From the NCBI GenBank assembly GCA_000320545.1, contig ADNK01000266.1:62001-126000 (forward strand): a DNA stretch of 64,000 nucleotides, given 5' to 3'. The stretch is from Bigelowiella natans CCMP2755 (Eukaryota > Protista > Cercozoa). The notes beneath the pieces are model-generated. The model saw only the letters and a list, made by a program, of their open reading frames with translations. It ran no database searches and was not told the DNA's origin. Below, piece by piece: positions 2,527 to 31,981 of this stretch; position 1 is the stretch's first letter; each line of letters opens with the position of its first letter. Both the position numbers and the translations under genes were made by a program.

Positions 2527-3261
2527 AGATAACAACGCCGGCGTTAGACCCAAATGCCCTCGGTACTTTTCAGAGTCTTTACCGGTAATAAAAGTACTTC
2601 TGCTTTACCAGCAGCTGCTTGATCGTCAGCATGATGATCCGAGGATGTGTGCAAGGCTCCTCCTTTCGTCTTGTTTTCCTTTCCCTCTCCACAGATTCTC
2701 ATCAGCGGAGAGAAATTATGACCTTCGTCGCTTTGCTACTCTCCCTGCTGAGGATCTGAGTAGTACTTCAGAGGATGATGTTCTCATGCCTTTATCCTGG
2801 CCAAAATGCTACGCTAGCAGCCCTGATTATGCTGTATAGCATTTCGAGCATCGTTGCCGTTGTATCTTGGATGTTTTCTCGCTTGCAGCAATCTCTTATC
2901 GATTGATGTAGCGTGGCATCATCAAACAAATATAATACTCAGGGCACCTTTTCGAGGAAAGCTCACAGTGAACGATATGATGGCATCTCTACCACAGGTA
3001 GTACTGCTGCTGCTGCTGCTGCTACTTCCATATCGCACCTATAAATAGTTGATTAATGGATCAGTAAGAATCGTCCAGAATTTATGATGATTGTGATGAT
3101 GATGATGATGATGATGATGAGGAGGAGGAGGAGGAGGAGCAGGGGGGTGGAGAATGGTCCTCCTTTGAGCGTTATATAGCAATAGGGATCTGGCTTTTTT
3201 GAGAGTTGCATCTTCAACCCGACATTGCGAAAAGAATAAGAAGAAGACGATGATGAATTAC

Positions 3262-3294
<33 letters not shown>

Positions 3295-3400
3295 AATGAT
3301 GTACACGTAGGATATGAAGGTGCTTCTATTGTGGGGTCAGCAAGACCCATGGATGCAACCGGAGAAGGTGAAAAAGTCTATTTTACAACGTTTTCATTTT
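14..3400 (-). CDS. Multi-exon gene of unknown function (boundaries approximate; may run off the left edge)
   Basis: Complex, exon-like blocks alternate with (CAT)n/(GT)n/(CA)n intron-like tracts, with minus-strand GT..AG borders. One block reads KKPDPYCYITLKGG (about 3167-3193), weakly like the C2-domain 'DPY' strand. No full model could be built by eye. Confidence 0.35.
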
Positions 3401-4519
3401 ATTGTTTTTCATTGCATAAGAAGGGACATATAACAACTATTCAAAACACTCTAAATCCTAAGAGTCTCCAAAATGCAACTTACACCTAATAGCTATTTTG
3501 CTGTTCTCGTAGGCCCACCAAATAATGCGTATTTGCGATAAGCGTGGGCTGGAGTGCGACTACGTCCCGCTAGCAGCTGGCCACTGCCCTCAGGTACCAT
3601 ATATGAGAAGAATGATACACTAAAACAAATACCGCATTTACCGCATTTGAAGTTCCATGTGATGATGCATTGGTGACCTTTTTAACAGCCGAACTCCGGA
3701 TTTGTGCGTCTATTTTGTGTGTCGCCATCATCTTTAATTATTTTCTCTCAATGCATACAGGATGACAATCCCGAGGATCTAAACGAGAGTTTGATGCGCT
3801 GGGTTGATGTTAATTTCTCTGAGGTTGCGATTTAGCTGAGGTGACCTGCATTTATCCATGCCGATCGGCAACACTAGCTACCTAGCTCCTTCGACGATCT
3901 GAGGCCACTGATGGTTCTAGTGGTGCTTCTCGATGTACAGACAATATACAAACTTTCCTTTCATGTAAACAAGCATGTAAATTTGTCACGCACAATGAAA
4001 CACAAAATGCAATTGCACCAATGCTCGTAAGTAAGCGATGCCAAGATGCAATGATGTGTGCATAGCCGTTGCGGCACGATGCTACGGCACATGCATGTAC
4101 GCCTTGTGCCATGTGTTTGACGCTGATCGCTAGTCGCACGTGGGTGGGGTATCAACGTCAGCAAATGTATTGCATCTATGTGTGCAGCTACATTGTCTCG
4201 GCAGATCGAACGCAACATGATGGATCCTTGCACGTCAAATCATCAACGTTCCGCGTATTTTTGAGCTGACAAACGTGTTCCAAATTGCTATTATTTTAGT
4301 GCATTTTTAAGCAAGCGTGTGCATATCGCTTCGCATTGTACGCTCCATTGATGCGCTTGCGTGGTGCCTTGATCGCTTACGTTTGTAATTCATGCGTGCA
4401 TCATCAAATCAGTACCAAAAAGGTTTTCATGTGATAAAGTTAAATTCAATGGTCGTAGGTTGACCTTGCATCATTTCAATTTCAATTCATAATCCAAGCC
4501 GTTTCATTTAGTGATCATT

Positions 4520-5890
4520 TTAAGACATGTATTCAGCGATATTGGCAGGCATTTCCTCGATTTTGGTGTTATAGAAACGTTCCAGCTCTCTTAGGGTGCT
4601 CGCATCGCGATTGGTGACTAAGTTTATCGTAACACCGTTGCGACCGAATCTTCCTGCTCGACCAATTCGATGGATGTAGTTCTCTTTGTTTCCAGGAAGA
4701 TCAAAATTGACCACTAGACTTAGATTCTGAAAGTCAATCCCTCGGGCTAGAATATCCGTAGAAATCAACACTCGAGATTTTCCATTTCGAAAGGCTGTTA
4801 CAACATCCCTCCTCTCTTGGTCTTTGAGGTCAGAATGGATTGCGCTCACGACGTGATCTCGCCGGGTCAGCTCGTCCTCTAGCCACTGTACCGTTCGCCT
4901 GGTGTTGGCAAAGATGATGCTTTGATTGATACTGAGCGTGTCGAACAAGTCGACCAATGTCGGAAGCTTCCAGTCACTCTGATCCAAAGCTATGTAGAAT
5001 TGCTTTAAGCCATCCAAAGTGAGGCTTGTCTCCTTGACCAAGATCTCGACGGAGTCACTCATAAACTTCTGGGTGAGCTCGAGAACTTCCTCAGGCATCG
5101 TCGCCGACACAAGGACAACTTGAACGTCCTTCCTGAGAGACTCGAATATATCGTAAATCTGTTCCCTAAAGCCATGTGAAAGCATCTCGTCTGCCTCATC
5201 GATGACGATCATCTTCACGTCGTCTGTTCGTAGGACTCCTTCGCGTATCAAGTGGAAGATTCTCCCTGGGGTACCAATCGCTATTTGGACGCCCTTGCGG
5301 AATGCATCCTTATCGTCGAAGAACCTGTTCCCTCCAACACAAAGATGAGTCGTAATCTTCGTGTAATCTCCAAGGCACGTCGCCACCGTATGGCTCTGAC
5401 GTGCTAGCTCTCTCACAGGCGAGACGATGATAGTTTGCGTCTCGCGGATCTTTGTATCTATCTTCTCCAAGGCGGCGATGACAAACGCCCCTGTTTTACC
5501 TGTACCAGCCTGTGCCTGTGCTATGACATTGCGCCCAGCGATAATAGGCATTATGGCTCGCTGCTGAATCGGCGACGGCTCCTCGAAACCATAGGAATAT
5601 ATCCCTCTCAGGACGTTCGTCTTAAGCCCCATCTTGTCAAAGGACTCTACCGGTCCAAATTTGTTACTTTTTTTACCATCTTCAGTATTGCCATCGTTGC
5701 TATCTTTGGATTCTGTTTTAGCATTTTCCCGTCCCTTGCGAGTTGCATCATCGTCGTCGTGCCACCGGTCATGGTTCTCACTGGAAGTGTTGCTTCTGCT
5801 GCTCTTTCCACTGAGCGAAGGCTCCCTCGTCTGGTCGCCATTCTGCTCAGTTTTCGTCATAGTGGTTGTTGTATTGGTAATTGTCGACAT
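4520..5890 (-). CDS. eIF4A: DEAD-box RNA helicase, eIF4A family, intronless and divergent, with an acidic/Ser-rich N-terminal extension of about 75 aa
   Basis: 456-aa ORF with Q motif [60 protein letters not shown] and an eIF4A-like end [10 protein letters not shown]. Confidence 0.9.
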
Positions 5891-24463: not shown

Positions 24464-27400
24464 CTAGTGGGCTCGTTCGATGCCTTTTCTTTTCTTCGTA
24501 GCATTTGTCGCCATGGACAGTCTCCGAAAAACTGATGGCATGTTAGAGTTGCTAGTGGGAGACTTAACTTTCTTTTTTTTCTTAATTCTTGTCTTTGGCT
24601 TGCCTCTAAATTTCTCAGTTTTTTTACGAATCTCTCTTGAGAGTTTCATGCTTGAGGCCTGCAACCTGGCTCCACGCTCATAGATTGACTTTGTAGCAAG
24701 CGAAATGCCCTTTAGGGTAGTACCATTACCTCGGGTTGTGGGTAACTTTTCCTCCTTCAGAGTAGACTTTTGGTTATAATTGATTTCATCATCTGAAGGA
24801 AACGTATCGAAAGAGGTATCTGTATTTGGAATGACAAAAACTATTGTCACTGCAATGTTAAGCCTATCACAGGTACGAAGCGAAATTCTCATCTGCATTG
24901 GATCTTCTGAAACTTCTGTGCCATTTATTGACTTGATAGCCATAGCCCTCTTGATTCCATGCAGATCAGCGCCTCCCCCGGGACGGACACTCAAAACCGA
25001 ATTTCTTTTAGGATGCATTTGAAATGCTGCTTCGCTTAGAGAATTGAACTTAGCCGTGATGATGAGAGGCTCGTCACTCACATCAGGTTCACGCTCTAGT
25101 TGCGAGAAAGTGGTAGAATCACTATCTTCTCCACTTTTAACCTTAACATCTTCACGTTCTAATTGAGAAAATGTCGATGGCTCACGACTTGCACTCTGTA
25201 GTAGCCTATCGGACAATCTTTTGTCCAGTTCTAGGCTGCAGCAGCCTGAATCGTGGTTGAAGATCCTCTCCCCTTCATAAAATATAGGCGTATGTGCACT
25301 TTTTTCACTGTGATTGCTGCTGTCGAGAAGAGCTAGAGGCTTATCAGAATTGACTGTTCCAGGCATATCGGTGATAAATTCTATCTTTTCGTCCTTGTCC
25401 TTGTTGATAAGGGAAATTTGAGCATTTTCTGAATCCAAGCGACAAGAGATTGTGTCCGCCCCCAGACCACTTTTAGAGGCTGTGGAGCTCAAGGAAACGT
25501 TTGAAAGTTCTATCTGAAACTCGCTTTTGAGTGCAACTATTCTTCGAAGAACACGGCGAAAACGGCCATAGCTGTGGACTTGCCTGCCCTCAATCGATTT
25601 TATATACCATCCAACCTTTAGCCCTATGCCAGACTGGATGACCTCAGTAACACGCAAGCTGCGATCAATTTTGCAAGTTTCTACGTCACTAGGCAATGTG
25701 AGAACGCACACGGACTCCACAGACGTCATCATCTTTTTAGCATCGCTATTGTCATCATTTTCTCTAGATATGTACGTAGAATAACCTAGGGCACATGGAC
25801 CTATAATGATAAATTCGATGAAGGCTGTTGTGAGAATCCTCATCGCAAAATCTTGCCCGAACGTCACAAGTGTATATCTGACCGTCGCAAAAGCAGTTTT
25901 TTTCTGCATCCTCCAGGATAGTACGGAGATAAAAAAAATCGCGCCAATCGCGAACACAAACACAACTGTAAAGGCGAATGCATCCCACATAGACCACGTT
26001 TGATTTTCGATGAATTTGAATCTAGTTGAAAAGTTTAGAATCATGCTAGGCTTGTTGATATCTCTTTTGTGGGTCTCAACGAGAATGCTGTATGTTCGTT
26101 TACTTGCCCATTTCCCCTCATTTTTTGTGTTTTTCGAATCTATTGAATGACCCAAGAGATTCATACAGCTCTCGTAATTTTGTGGTGAAGAGCTACGAAC
26201 AGCTGAATTTTTCTGCATATCGTTTCTGCTCATTGCTACCTGAGAGCCGACTGTCGTAGCGGCTGTATTAACGATGAGACCTTTGGCGTCTACAGCATTT
26301 TTTTTTTCATCCTCCTCCTCATTCTCATCCAAATCTCTATTATTGTCTTCATCCTGATCGGTTTTACCGTTGTCGTCATTCTCGCCGTTGGTGTCCTCAT
26401 CCTCTACATTTAGCCCGTCATAATATTCGTTTGCCAACAGGGAAAAGATGAGGAGTAGACAGGGAATTTGATTAAGACATGACGACCTAGGCTTTAAATT
26501 TATCTTAAACCATCCGGAGTGGGTCGATAGAACAGCGAGGATTATCACGTAGGGAAGAGGGTAGCTAAAGACTACAGCCAAAAGTGCAACAGCTGCCTTT
26601 CCGACCAGAAGGCCAAACTCTGCTCGTGTCCATCAGAAGCGCCACAACTACCATGGAATTCAGTGTCAACGCAAGGAGGATCGTCAATCGTTTCCGAGCA
26701 TTCATATAGTCTCCTGGGTGGTGACTAACTACTGACAGCCACGTATGCCTTTGCATCAACCCCCATCTGAATGATGTGCCAAAATTCTTCTACGAGCGCT
26801 GGCCCTCTGCGTGAAGCTTCCGAACCTGATTTCCGCGACGCCAAAAGTCTCTTTCACCTTGGTGGGTGAGAGCAGTGACCTGCGCGTCCTTATTATCAGT
26901 AGCCCATAAAGAAATATAGAGAACCATGTATATGGCAAAAATTGAATATAAAAGAGCTGCCACAACGTTTTTCCTTGGGTCTATAGAGCAAATATCCGCG
27001 ATATCGGATGCCGAGATCGTATTGACCTCTACATTGAGTCTCATCTGGCTGGAAAAAGATGTGAGGTGAGTAGTTTCGCAAATGACCGAGCTTCTATTTT
27101 CGGCAAGTCTCACGAACCGAACTCCATCTGTCGACCATTCATTACCAGTCCAAAAAACAGCCGAGAAATTCCAACCCTCCCGAAGCAGCATTTCGGTGTG
27201 ACTTTGATTCTGGCTCACAGGTAGCGTATACCGAATAGGGTCTTCCAACCCTCGAACAGGTATCTTGTTATTTGTATTCGGATCCCTGATCTCAACGACA
27301 GCCACCCCGGCGGAAGATGCGTTCAGGGGAGTCGGGTAGATCGCTCCGTTCATGAGTGACACGAAACTCAGCGCAGCTTGCGCAAAGCCTGACACGTTTG

Positions 27401-28780
27401 GGATTTCGGGAAACGAAACAGTAGCTCCTGTGAAGCTGTGCGTTAATGCGGTGTTCCCCACCCTCTCGCCTTTCAGTACTCTGCCGCTCACTTGAAGGAT
27501 TGAGTCATTTTTCACTCCAGGAAAGGAAAGCTTTCTCTCGTCTTCTCCAATCACAGCATCTTTTAGCATCATGCGAGATAAGCTATGGATCACTGCATCC
27601 GCCTTCATTGCAAGATTGGGGTTGAATCCTTGTGAGAAATCTGCGCCAGTGGATACCTCTTTGGAATGTAATGAAATCAAGTTTCTCAGCCCAGACCCTG
27701 AAGCAATCAGAGTGTTCCGAGGGTTTTCCCCATAAGAATCGCGGTCGGCGGCTATCTTCGTGACGTCCGTGAGAATATCAAGGGCTTGGTTCGAGAGATG
27801 GTCTTTTAATTCAGGCGATAGTATAGCTGTTACTGCCTGAACCAACGTCGCTGAATTTTCCACGTTAATAGACTTCGCACGAGTTTCGAATTGGGAGGTC
27901 GAGTCAAGGGTAACCGAGGCGATCATTTGTAGGAGGTTTTGCTGCTGGTCGGAACTGATCCTACCATCGGCAGATAGCGCAACACGTGAGTCGTGAAGCT
28001 TTGTAGATCTCCGTCTGCAACTGTGTCCCGAAATTTTGATAGCTCAATCTCCACATTGAGATTATCTGGTCTAGATACATTGACGAAGAACTGGCTGTAA
28101 GTTTCCGCTCCCAGGTCGTCCATGATAATTGCTCGCATCTCCAACCTGGCCGAGGCATCGTTTCCGCTCCCAGCAGGTGCTGGAAGGACGGTGTCATAGG
28201 TTGGCAAGAACCTATTCGCACACACATCGCTATATATTCTATCCGATGGGAGGCTCCCATAATACCGAACAGTTTGAAATTTGTATTGTAGCGGATGGTC
28301 ATCATCAGTCCACCCAGAACAAGCTAGCCGGAAGTTTGTTTCTAATCCCGTTCCGACTGCAGGGGAGGAGCCGCAAGTCCCGAGACGTGGGGCTTCGTTG
28401 GTCTGGATCTTCACGAGAAAGGGTATTGTAGATGCACTTGACGTAGTAACGAGAGCAGAGAATACATATTCCGTCGCGGGTTTTAGGGAATTTGGCGCAA
28501 GGACAAGATTGACTTCGTGAACCCCTGACAACAGCGACGAGCGGTCGCTGAGATTAAAATTTCTAGATTGGCAAATCCAGGTGGTATTGGCATCTCTCCA
28601 TGGCATCGCAGGTCATTTGTTTCATTTTCACAAACCGATAGTTGTTTCCTAGTATGAAATCTATGTCTTACCTTGTATCGAGGTTTCGCCGGAACCCCGC
28701 GTGGGATCCCCTTTGATCGTGATGGTCGAAACGTTCGGAGAAAGTTCTTCACGAAATGTGCTGAGTCAGCGAAGCATGAA
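24464..28780 (-). pseudogene. PKD1-like REJ-GAIN/GPS-multi-TM-PDZ gene, disrupted and apparently 5'-truncated
   Basis: REJ-like segment (PATEYVF, NEAPRLGTC, ACSGWTDDDHPLQYKF), GPS motif WSTDGV..VICETTHLTSFS, several TM segments and two PDZ-like segments. Lesions: frame change near 27990, in-frame TAG at 26790-26792, frame change near 26620; no usable GT-AG introns found at these points. Confidence 0.72.
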
Positions 28781-29072
28781 AATCGGTAATTCCAGACATC
28801 TTGAATGAAACGTTGTGGTTTTGCATGAAATGATCACCAATTTGGCATTTTTGGTGAAAAACGTAGAATCACAAACTTTTAAGACATTGAGCTTTACAAA
28901 AGTAATAAATGAGTTGTTAGATTTGGTGAAATTTGATGAATAATCTTTGTCGCCACTTAAAATCCTCCAACCGCTGCGACCTACGCTTGGTGGAAACGCA
29001 GCTCGTTGATAATTTCATAAGAATGTTCAGAAAGGCCAGTCAGAATCCAAAGAGTTAACCTTGTCCGTAGTG

Positions 29073-30263
29073 ATGGATAAAGATCGCCTCTTCCAGCACT
29101 TCCTGAGCCTGGACAAACCTGCGCTGGACACGCTGATGAAGAAGTGCCGAAACGACGATGGGGACGACGACAGTAGTGATCGAATAAAGAGAAGTCATCA
29201 ACCGAGGAAAAAGAACCGGAAATGTGGCGTTGAGTGCGACGGCGACAGCGACGATGGAGAAAAGAAGAAAGCAAAAGGACGGAAAAGGAAAACCGTAGAA
29301 TTCGAGAACGGTTCATGTACCCAAGAAGAAAAAGCTGCTGCTTTGACAGATCCTAAAATCCGTCGTCGACTGCAGAATAGACGAGCTGCAAAAACTTCAC
29401 GAGCAAGGAAGAAGGCATACATCAACCTTCTGGAGGAAAAAACAAAGCTTTTGGAGGATAAGGTTTTTGAATTGGTAGAGAGAAATAAAAAATTGGAGGA
29501 TCGATTGAAAGCTCTAGAAACAGGTCGAGGCGAGCGCCTGAAGAAGAAACAACGAACCCTTCCCACTCAAAGAGACGGCTCGATAAAAAATGGCTGCACT
29601 TTGGGAAACCTGGAAACATTTCCTTCGATTTCTTCCGTTCCTTTGCAATTGATTGACGACGACACATCTACCATTTCCATGAATGAAGATATAGATGAAA
29701 GGAAAAGGGGGAAATCTTCCGAAAGGGGCCCTTTTCAACTCTTTGGCCAAAATTTGAGAAGCAAGCAAGATGCAGTATCTATCGGGGATACTCCAACTTG
29801 CTTCAGACTAGATACACTGGATCAGTATGCCTTAGAATCTTCCAATTTGGATCGGGAGAAGGAAGCGCGAAACGAGTTCGGTTTGAACGTACAGGGATTC
29901 ACCTCGTCAGCAGAACGTAGGATGGAAAAACCACAGCAGATGGCATCCCTTCCGTTGAAATCAACTCACCAGCTTTTCCATCACTCAGAGATCTCGAAAT
30001 TGAATTCGAACATCAAAAATCATTCACTGGATCAAGTGACATTTGTCCTCCTATATTTGGTCGGCATCGTTCTTTCCCAAGCGAACTTCTGTTCGATGAA
30101 CCGATGCTCGTGGGGGATGATGCCAAAACAAACGACATTATTTAATCTCAACCAAGACAGGAACAAAGGGACGGCAAGAATGTTTTCGAATATACCAAGG
30201 ACTATGTTTTCATTGCCTCAGCCCTGTAGCATGTCATTTAATGTATGTGACACATGTACATAG
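29073..30263 (+). CDS. bZIP transcription factor, XBP1/HAC1/bZIP60-like (unspliced form about 396 aa; predicted spliced form stops at 30145)
   Basis: Basic region KIRRRLQNRRAAKTSRARKKAY plus a leucine zipper (LEEKTKLLEDKVFELVERNKKLEDRLKAL). Hydrophobic segment VTFVLLYLVGIVL in the unspliced tail. No spliceosomal intron is needed. Confidence 0.88.
   Translation: MDKDRLFQHFLSLDKPALDTLMKKCRNDDGDDDSSDRIKRSHQPRKKNRKCGVECDGDSDDGEKKKAKGRKRKTVEFENGSCTQEEKAAALTDPKIRRRLQNRRAAKTSRARKKAYINLLEEKTKLLEDKVFELVERNKKLEDRLKALETGRGERLKKKQRTLPTQRDGSIKNGCTLGNLETFPSISSVPLQLIDDDTSTISMNEDIDERKRGKSSERGPFQLFGQNLRSKQDAVSIGDTPTCFRLDTLDQYALESSNLDREKEARNEFGLNVQGFTSSAERRMEKPQQMASLPLKSTHQLFHHSEISKLNSNIKNHSLDQVTFVLLYLVGIVLSQANFCSMNRCSWGMMPKQTTLFNLNQDRNKGTARMFSNIPRTMFSLPQPCSMSFNVCDTCT
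29911..29936 (+). other. Predicted IRE1-type unconventional intron (26 nt)
   Basis: Two 7-nt CAGCAGA loops (29908-29914, 29934-29940), each on a stem, closed by AGGGAT/ATCCCT. Cutting at CAG|CAG removes exactly 26 nt and opens a new frame to TAA at 30143-30145. Confidence 0.75.
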
Positions 30264-30941: not shown

Positions 30942-31261
30942 TATTATTGTTATGACCACTACCACAACTACCTCTACAACTACTACTAATAGTAGTAGTG
31001 CTGCTGCTGCTGCTACTGCTATACTGCTACGATACTATAATAATTGATGTCGATTACCTTCTAACACCATCGTCATCTCCTTCGTATCATGTCTTGAACT
31101 CATTTACAGCTGCTAATTCAATACTCATGAAACTTAGTACGATTTACGATGATGATGAGGATGATGATGGTGTTGATGATTCTACGTACTACCTCTTATT
31201 ACGTGGTTGGGTTTTCTTTTCATCTACTCATTGCAGGCTTTCTAAAGTGCTGCTGTCTCTT

Positions 31262-31315
<54 letters not shown>

Positions 31316-31981
31316 TTCCTTTCTCTATCTCCCCCCCCCTCACCCTCCTTCTCAATCTATTCATCAATCTAATACTCTCATGCCTAGCTAGCTGTAGTGT
31401 AGATCTACCATGCAGCGGCACAAGTGATGCACAATGAACACTAGAACACTGGCTGCAGCACGTATACACGACGCAGCTGTTTGTTGTTTGTCACGTTGTG
31501 CGTGCTTGAGTGATGTCAATGCTGAAATGCGTACCAACAATGTCAGAGTGGGCAACTTGCAATCACAGGTCCGCCCTGCCCGCGATTTGTTGCATGTTTG
31601 GTCAGATTCAGCACACTTGTGTGGACGCTGCAGCGTGGCGCTCGCATGCAAAACAAAGTCATTGGAACTGCGTGCGCGTGTGCATGCGTGCATGCACTTG
31701 GCGTGCACGTTGTCGGTTGTCAACATTGTCGGCTGTCGACAATGCGTTCAACAGATTGAGTGACGACGATGCACATGTCGCTTTAGATGAATCGCCATTT
31801 CATTGTGTAGTTTCTTCCTCGTGTGCCCTAGCCGTTGTCTTCAAATCCTCTGATTTCTCCATTTGCATGCACCAAGTAGCTCATTCCCACAACGGGGTCG
31901 TTGTTTTGCATTGTTACACTTTCTGATATTTTTAGTTTTATTTTGAGCTAATGATTGCACCATGTTTTTCATTTGTTTGCA

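Follow-up and report, generated by a model that had tools for sequence, protein, structure and literature searches.

The window analysed here is a stretch of 64,000 nucleotides (nt) from the genome of the rhizarian alga Bigelowiella natans CCMP2755 (contig ADNK01000266.1, positions 62,001 to 126,000 of the forward strand). It contains an XBP1/bZIP60-like gene for a bZIP protein, and within the coding sequence, at 29893-29950, lies a real, conserved splice signal of the IRE1 type. We consider it very probable that the mRNA encodes an XBP1/bZIP60-type stress transcription factor that is activated by splicing independent of the spliceosome. At the level of sequence, the case consists of the RNA structure itself, its conservation and covariation, and two conserved overlapping reading frames, of which the spliced one is the more constrained; transcripts of a distant relative add exact removal of the segment from loop to loop. 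All positions below are those of the window, and the gene lies on its plus strand.

A twin-hairpin signal in a bZIP gene

The signal is made up of two adjacent hairpins inside a basal stem, in which the 5' arm AGGGAU (29893-29898) pairs with the 3' arm AUCCCU (29945-29950). Hairpin 1 (29902-29921) pairs CCUCGU (29902-29907) with ACG-U-AGG (29915-29921), leaving one U bulged, and presents the loop CAGCAGA (29908-29914) with a predicted 5' cut after G29910. Hairpin 2 (29931-29943) pairs CCA (29931-29933) with UGG (29941-29943) and presents the same loop at 29934-29940, with a predicted 3' cut after G29936. These are the features of the class: two 7-nt loops of the form CNG/NNGN (the slash marks the cut), each closed by a stem (here 3+3 base pairs (bp) with one bulge, and 3 bp), on neighbouring hairpins that a flanking stem joins into a three-way junction. 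Cutting CAG/CAG in both loops would remove a predicted unconventional intron of 26 nt (29911-29936). When both strands of the 64 kb are scanned for pairs of CNGCNGN heptamers with closing stems of 3 bp or more and a spacing of 15-40 nt that is not a multiple of 3, the loops at 29908 and 29934 are the sole pair returned; a first-order Markov simulation expects 0.03 per window.

The unspliced coding sequence (29073-30263) runs without a conventional intron from the ATG at 29073 to the stop TAG at 30261-30263 and specifies 396 amino acids. Residues 95-149 form the bZIP domain (29355-29519), consisting of the basic region KIRRRLQNRRAAKTSRARKKAY and a leucine zipper; the window protein scores above the curated cut-offs of Pfam bZIP_1 (E = 5e-7, 30.1 bits versus 27.6) and bZIP_2 (26.1 bits versus 22.3). 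Near the N-terminus, the motif LFQHFLSLDKPALDTL (29088-29135) is common to the entire protist family, judging from the alignment and the sequences of distant relatives. Its pattern, LF.HFL.L..P.LD, occurs in all family members, distant environmental transcripts included (P0132, P0134, P0136, P0146 and P0195), and is a handy family marker.

Past the hairpins, the unspliced frame continues into a basic tail with the hydrophobic stretch VTFVLLYLVGIVL (30036-30074), which is found in this frame only and lies 75 codons ahead of its stop. Once the 26 nt are removed, this tail gives way to an acidic one (29937-30145) of 69 residues including the junction codon, with 13 acidic (D/E) and 5 basic (K/R) residues, a conserved motif, PIFGRHRSFPSELLFDEPMLVG, at 30050-30115 and a stop TAA at 30143-30145. 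The spliced open reading frame (ORF) comprises 348 amino acids and ends in ...TNDII. A preliminary description of this DNA had proposed an XBP1/HAC1-like bZIP gene and had placed the loops, both hairpin stems, the basal stem and the intron where we find them; it had also foreseen the hydrophobic stretch and the change of frame to an acidic tail stopping at 30145, and all of this agrees with the sequence and the domain matches.

Relatives and covariation of the hairpins

An ORF search returns three proteins: an MMETSP transcript ORF of equal length and 99% identity to the window ORF, flagged 'complete'; an ortholog of 70% identity (P0002, transcript contig L001); and P0003 (L002), 46% identical over the bZIP region. 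A profile search of 1.84 billion representative sequences adds P0128 (L005), P0129 and P0276 (L006, L007), P0130 and P0278 (genomic metagenome scaffolds L008-L010) and P0131, which EukProt assigns to the chlorarachniophyte Amorphochlora amoebiformis. It also yields more distant bZIP proteins with the LF.HFL.L..P.LD motif, namely P0132 (L012), P0134 (L011), P0140 (L013) and P0146 and P0195 (L003, L004). The closest named relatives are chlorarachniophytes, and the earlier placement of the gene in a lineage outside animals, fungi and plants is supported. Near-identical sequences from several MMETSP strains suggest Bigelowiella.

For the L008 locus (2604-3725; also L009 and L010), gene callers use three upstream ATGs, giving models of 373, 329 and 315 amino acids. 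The longer models are probably over-extended, since only the 315-residue NCBI model starts with the family N-terminal motif.

The signal can be compared in nine relatives with obtainable DNA, five close and four distant. Every one of them has two 7-nt CNGCNGN loops at the homologous place, and relative to the annotated frame the two loops always begin at codon positions 2 and 1, respectively. The spacing of the loops varies, being 26 nt in L001 and L008, 29 in L002, 23 in L005 and L006, 20 in L004, L011 and L013, and 17 in L012; all of these are 2 mod 3. When the loops are held unpaired, each relative folds as two hairpins within a basal stem, forming a three-way junction. The basal stems themselves are unrelated in sequence, for example CCAGCGAC with GUCGCUGG in L002, GGUGACA with UGUCACC in L006, and GGCAAGC with GCUUGUC in L013. 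In L002, even the free minimum-energy structure is essentially the twin-hairpin fold (z = -3.5).

Because MAFFT gave no alignment of hairpin 2 or of the basal stems across all relatives, covariation was counted on fixed-length, ungapped hairpin segments, and the basal stems are described from the constrained folds. In hairpin 1, 86.7% of the cells are paired and all five pairs show compensatory change. In hairpin 2, 77.8% are paired, and the closing pair is seen as AU, CG, GC and UA among the relatives. Pairing falls to 28-56% when the 3' partners are slid, and for neither hairpin did any of 500 shuffles reach the observed covariation score.

A covariance model built from five relatives, with the window and L001 excluded, gives 29900-29948 a score of 30.2 bits (E about 4e-5), while the next match in the window has 14.6 bits; the model also recovers held-out sites in L001, L006, L012 and L016. 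In the relatives' loci, the Rfam model RF04247 (Hac1/Xbp1 intron) matches nowhere but at the predicted sites, with which its matches in L013 (31.7 bits), L012, L011 and L006 coincide exactly; the scores, 21.9-31.7 bits, are all under the 41-bit gathering threshold. In the metagenome_contigs collection, which apparently lacks MMETSP-type samples, a protein-pattern scan matched 404 stretches with none confirmed, and the twin-loop DNA pattern had no matches.

Selection on the spliced frame

Beyond the hairpins, the window and all nine relatives, ten sequences together, have both frames open. The preliminary description had proposed to check whether loops and overlapping frames are conserved in orthologs, and they are. 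The unspliced tail is net basic with a hydrophobic stretch in all ten (maximum Kyte-Doolittle score 1.55-2.57 over 15 residues). Nothing comparable occurs in the spliced tail, which is net acidic in nine, the exception being L006 (6 D/E versus 8 K/R).

Nucleotide identity between the window and L001 is 77% in the N-terminal region, 96% in the bZIP domain, 76% in the linker upstream of the hairpins, 97.5% in the twin-hairpin segment, 88.6% in the overlap of the two frames, 72% in the tail that is coding in the unspliced frame only, and 50% in the 3' untranslated region (UTR). Of the 21 substitutions in the two-frame overlap, 11 leave the spliced-frame protein unchanged, against only 4 for the annotated frame, and the spliced-frame stop is kept in L001 as a change from TAA to TGA. 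With BLASTP, the spliced tail of the window matches that of L005 at E = 1e-8 (for that pair); the spliced tails share the motif PIFGRxRS..SELL..P.L, which is also recognisable in L002 and L008. The substitutions show that the spliced frame is the more constrained of the two. Together with the retained stop and the tail motif, they show that selection acts on a frame that is accessible only if reading shifts by 2 mod 3 at the hairpins.

A pattern of another kind is seen at the end of the unspliced frame. Its C-terminus, NVCDTCT (30240-30260), is preceded by about 40 codons that have diverged from L001 (72% nucleotide identity), though NVCDTC (30240-30257) is unchanged at the end of the L001 ORF. 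XBP1u ends in a pausing or arrest peptide; by analogy, NVCDTC could be such a peptide, or an RNA element.

Transcripts with and without the segment

A distant relative provides a direct view of segment removal. The transcript L003 (run SRR13370276, protein P0146) and the transcripts L014-L018 (protein P0281) differ by one mismatch in about 1000 nt, apart from exactly 20 nt, CAGTTTTCAGCTTTCCGCAG, which lie between two CAG/CAG sites; L003 lacks them and L014-L018 retain them. The latter come from five other runs of one SRR133702xx/3xx project (SRR13370223/281/282/284/300). The deletion has eight equivalent placements, none of which begins with GT and ends with AG. It is a natural unconventional splice, located where the twin loops predict one.

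Of the six runs, a single one yielded the spliced form on assembly, a hint that the switch may depend on conditions in these data. The database ORFs of the window gene and its close relatives, including one NCBI record, are all unspliced, as would be expected for unstressed cultures; cluster members differ only in their start codons.

Proposed mechanism and its alternatives

In unstressed cells, the full ORF would be translated into the 396-residue bZIP protein with its basic tail. The hydrophobic stretch in that tail would tether the protein to the membrane of the endoplasmic reticulum (ER), probably along with the mRNA under translation, by analogy with HR2 of XBP1u and the transmembrane domain of bZIP60u. 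The RNA around 29893-29950 would form the three-way junction and display its two CAGCAGA loops. On ER stress, activated IRE1 would cut after the third base of each loop (G29910 and G29936), and an RNA ligase of the RtcB or Trl1 type would rejoin the ends. With the 26 nt lost, the product would carry the acidic 69-residue tail, with its conserved motif and without the hydrophobic stretch, and would act as a soluble nuclear activator. We infer that such splicing takes place in B. natans, and that the gene product may be a 'master regulator' of the unfolded protein response.

Several observations weigh against this mechanism. Folded alone, the window sequence is no stabler than shuffled sequence (z = 0.04 and -0.38); the twin-hairpin fold, when enforced, lies 0.7 kcal/mol above the minimum; and hairpin 2 is weak, with only 3 bp and with competing pairings. 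Up to E = 10, RF04247 matches nothing in the window. The transcripts L003 and L014-L018 are only distantly related to the window gene, through the bZIP domain and the N-terminal motif, and the databases searched, cluster members included, contain no spliced transcript of the window gene or of its five close relatives. Single-sequence folding is uninformative here, and the demonstrably spliced relative is equally weak, its twin-hairpin fold lying 3.6 kcal/mol above the minimum-energy fold. The RNA folding that the preliminary description had proposed gives the three-way junction in constrained folds.

The same tail could also be reached through a very short conventional intron, as the preliminary description noted. 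A GT at 29917 and an AG at 29935-29936 bound 20 nt (29917-29936), and since 20 is 2 mod 3, spliceosomal removal would shift the frame identically; the nucleomorph genes of chlorarachniophytes have introns of just 18-21 nt. The window, however, is nuclear rather than nucleomorph DNA, as indicated by its 40-50% G+C and its retroelements, and the segment is retained in all poly(A)-derived transcript assemblies. Nor is this intron conserved: the GT is missing from the segments of L005 and L011, the GT..AG length is 0 mod 3 in L004, L006, L012 and L013, and the deletion in L003, the sole case with a spliced transcript, fits no GT..AG placement. We regard a spliceosomal intron as highly improbable. 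Coincidence, in which two loops arise by accident from coding CAG repeats and no splicing occurs, would suit the frequency of CAGCAG as a coding hexamer, the unremarkable fold and the lack of a spliced window transcript in the databases searched. It would have to produce a pair of loops that is rarely expected by chance, conserve it in nine relatives with covarying stems, keep a second frame open and conserved, under tighter constraint than the annotated frame, and lead a covariance model that had not seen the window to 29900-29948 alone; the chance that it is right appears very slight.

Two further possibilities retain the hairpins or the second frame without joining RNA ends: ribosomal frameshifting into that frame, and cuts by IRE1 that lead to mRNA decay without ligation, similar to regulated IRE1-dependent decay (RIDD). 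Programmed frameshift genes do have conserved overlapping frames, and IRE1 also degrades mRNAs at loops of the CNGCNG type. By eye, however, no conserved slippery heptamer is seen between the in-frame TAG at 29918-29920 and the loops, and the run of A at 29926-29930 is interrupted in L001. Decay alone leaves the purifying selection on the spliced frame and its conserved stop unexplained, and a ligated product exists in the distant relative L003. Frameshifting and decay are, in our estimate, unlikely, with a small chance of being right. Splicing on the XBP1/bZIP60 model, as first proposed in the preliminary description, is upheld by the loops, codon phases and 2-mod-3 spacing in all nine relatives, by the covarying stems, by the stronger constraint on the spliced frame and by the loop-to-loop removal in the distant relative.

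Comparison with known IRE1 substrates

IRE1-type splicing of bZIP mRNAs has been confirmed in animals, yeasts, land plants and green algae, and what is lost is a hydrophobic region: XBP1, with an intron of 26 nt, loses HR2, and bZIP60, with one of 23 nt, its transmembrane domain (PMC11077094). RF04247 is recorded as metazoan in Rfam (PMC11701678), and a cross-eukaryote comparison is limited to three kingdoms (PMC4891664). Our literature search, of incomplete coverage and with a prior description possible, found no report of an IRE1-type splicing substrate in diatoms, stramenopiles, Rhizaria, Bigelowiella or other protists.

The window gene is like metazoan XBP1 in encoding a bZIP protein, in having two adjacent hairpins with 7-nt CNGCNGN loops in a flanking stem and a 26-nt intron, in a frame shift by which an acidic tail replaces one that has a hydrophobic region, and in the predominance of the unspliced form in unstressed transcriptomes. 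The loops of human XBP1u are presumably in the same codon phases as those of the window gene (..SA.. and ..QQ..). In contrast, sequence similarity does not extend past the generic bZIP domain, the window gene is rhizarian, and its stems are much weaker, hairpin 2 having 3 bp; this weakness is why RF04247 misses the window. To our knowledge, XBP1 has no N-terminal LF.HFL.L..P.LD motif. A sequence search of the PDB with the bZIP region of the window returns only generic bZIP proteins (TGA, CREB and GCN4), with no XBP1-specific link.

Fungal HAC1 shares the IRE1-type loops at both splice sites and the exchange of the C-terminal tail, and the 20-nt intron class of many fungi is also found in the distant relatives L004, L011 and L013. 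The HAC1 intron of Saccharomyces cerevisiae, at 252 nt, pairs with the 5' UTR and blocks translation, and there is no hydrophobic tail. The unspliced ORF of the window gene, in contrast, is open and contains a hydrophobic stretch, which is the logic of XBP1 and bZIP60.

The plant genes bZIP60, OsbZIP50 and MpbZIP7, with an intron of 23 nt, likewise have twin CxGxxG stem-loops in a flanking stem and lose a hydrophobic or transmembrane segment (PMC11077094). Introns of 23 nt are predicted in two close relatives of the window gene (L005 and L006). Unlike in the window gene, where the spliced tail itself is acidic and conserved, the activation domain of bZIP60 is N-terminal and splicing mainly drops the anchor; orthology between the two cannot be shown from sequence. 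CrbZIP1 of Chlamydomonas is also an IRE1-spliced bZIP mRNA of a unicellular alga, but its twin stem-loops lack CxGxxG (PMC11077094), whereas the window gene, from an unrelated supergroup, has strict CNGCNGN in both loops.

Implications

An IRE1-type stress switch seems to be present in a fourth, distant branch of the eukaryotes, which would add a fourth supergroup to those with the strict form of the mechanism. We know of no clear sequence homology among HAC1, XBP1 and bZIP60, so IRE1-driven mRNA splicing may have arisen once or several times. A strict CNGCNGN twin-hairpin bZIP gene in Rhizaria, with the 26 nt and the tail logic of XBP1 and with relatives in further marine protists, favours an ancient origin. 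On balance, we lean towards a twin-hairpin bZIP switch that is ancestral to eukaryotes and an unrecognised XBP1-like family, marked by LF.HFL.L..P.LD, that extends through the chlorarachniophytes and several marine protist lineages and is annotated throughout in its unspliced form.

The series of 17, 20, 23, 26 and 29 nt would suggest that the geometry of the loop pair is all that IRE1 measures. Weak hairpins of 3 bp are under selection and are found in the demonstrably spliced relative as well, which means that such substrates escape both thermodynamic screens and the current Rfam model. For protist biologists, the size shift of 26 nt would be a cheap, direct read-out of ER stress. The preliminary description had expected automated annotation to overlook the spliced isoform; the error is systematic, with every database ORF of the family being the presumed inactive isoform.

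Neighbourhood of the gene

The promoter region (28607-29072) contains neither TGACGT nor CACGTG; one CCAAT and one CGTGG are present, and nothing is distinctive. Directly upstream of the bZIP gene, on the minus strand at 26790-28606, a pair of neighbouring ORFs carries a GPS motif and a REJ domain (polycystin-like or adhesion-receptor-like). Also on the minus strand, at 4520-5890, is an intronless ORF for an eIF4A-like DEAD-box helicase, whose closest named relatives are two proteins of the chlorarachniophyte Partenskyella glossopodia (60% identity), a match that served to place the DNA among the chlorarachniophytes. About 1 kb downstream of the bZIP gene, at about 31250-31330, a simple repeat of the (CT)n type appears as SLSLSLSL in ORF listings.

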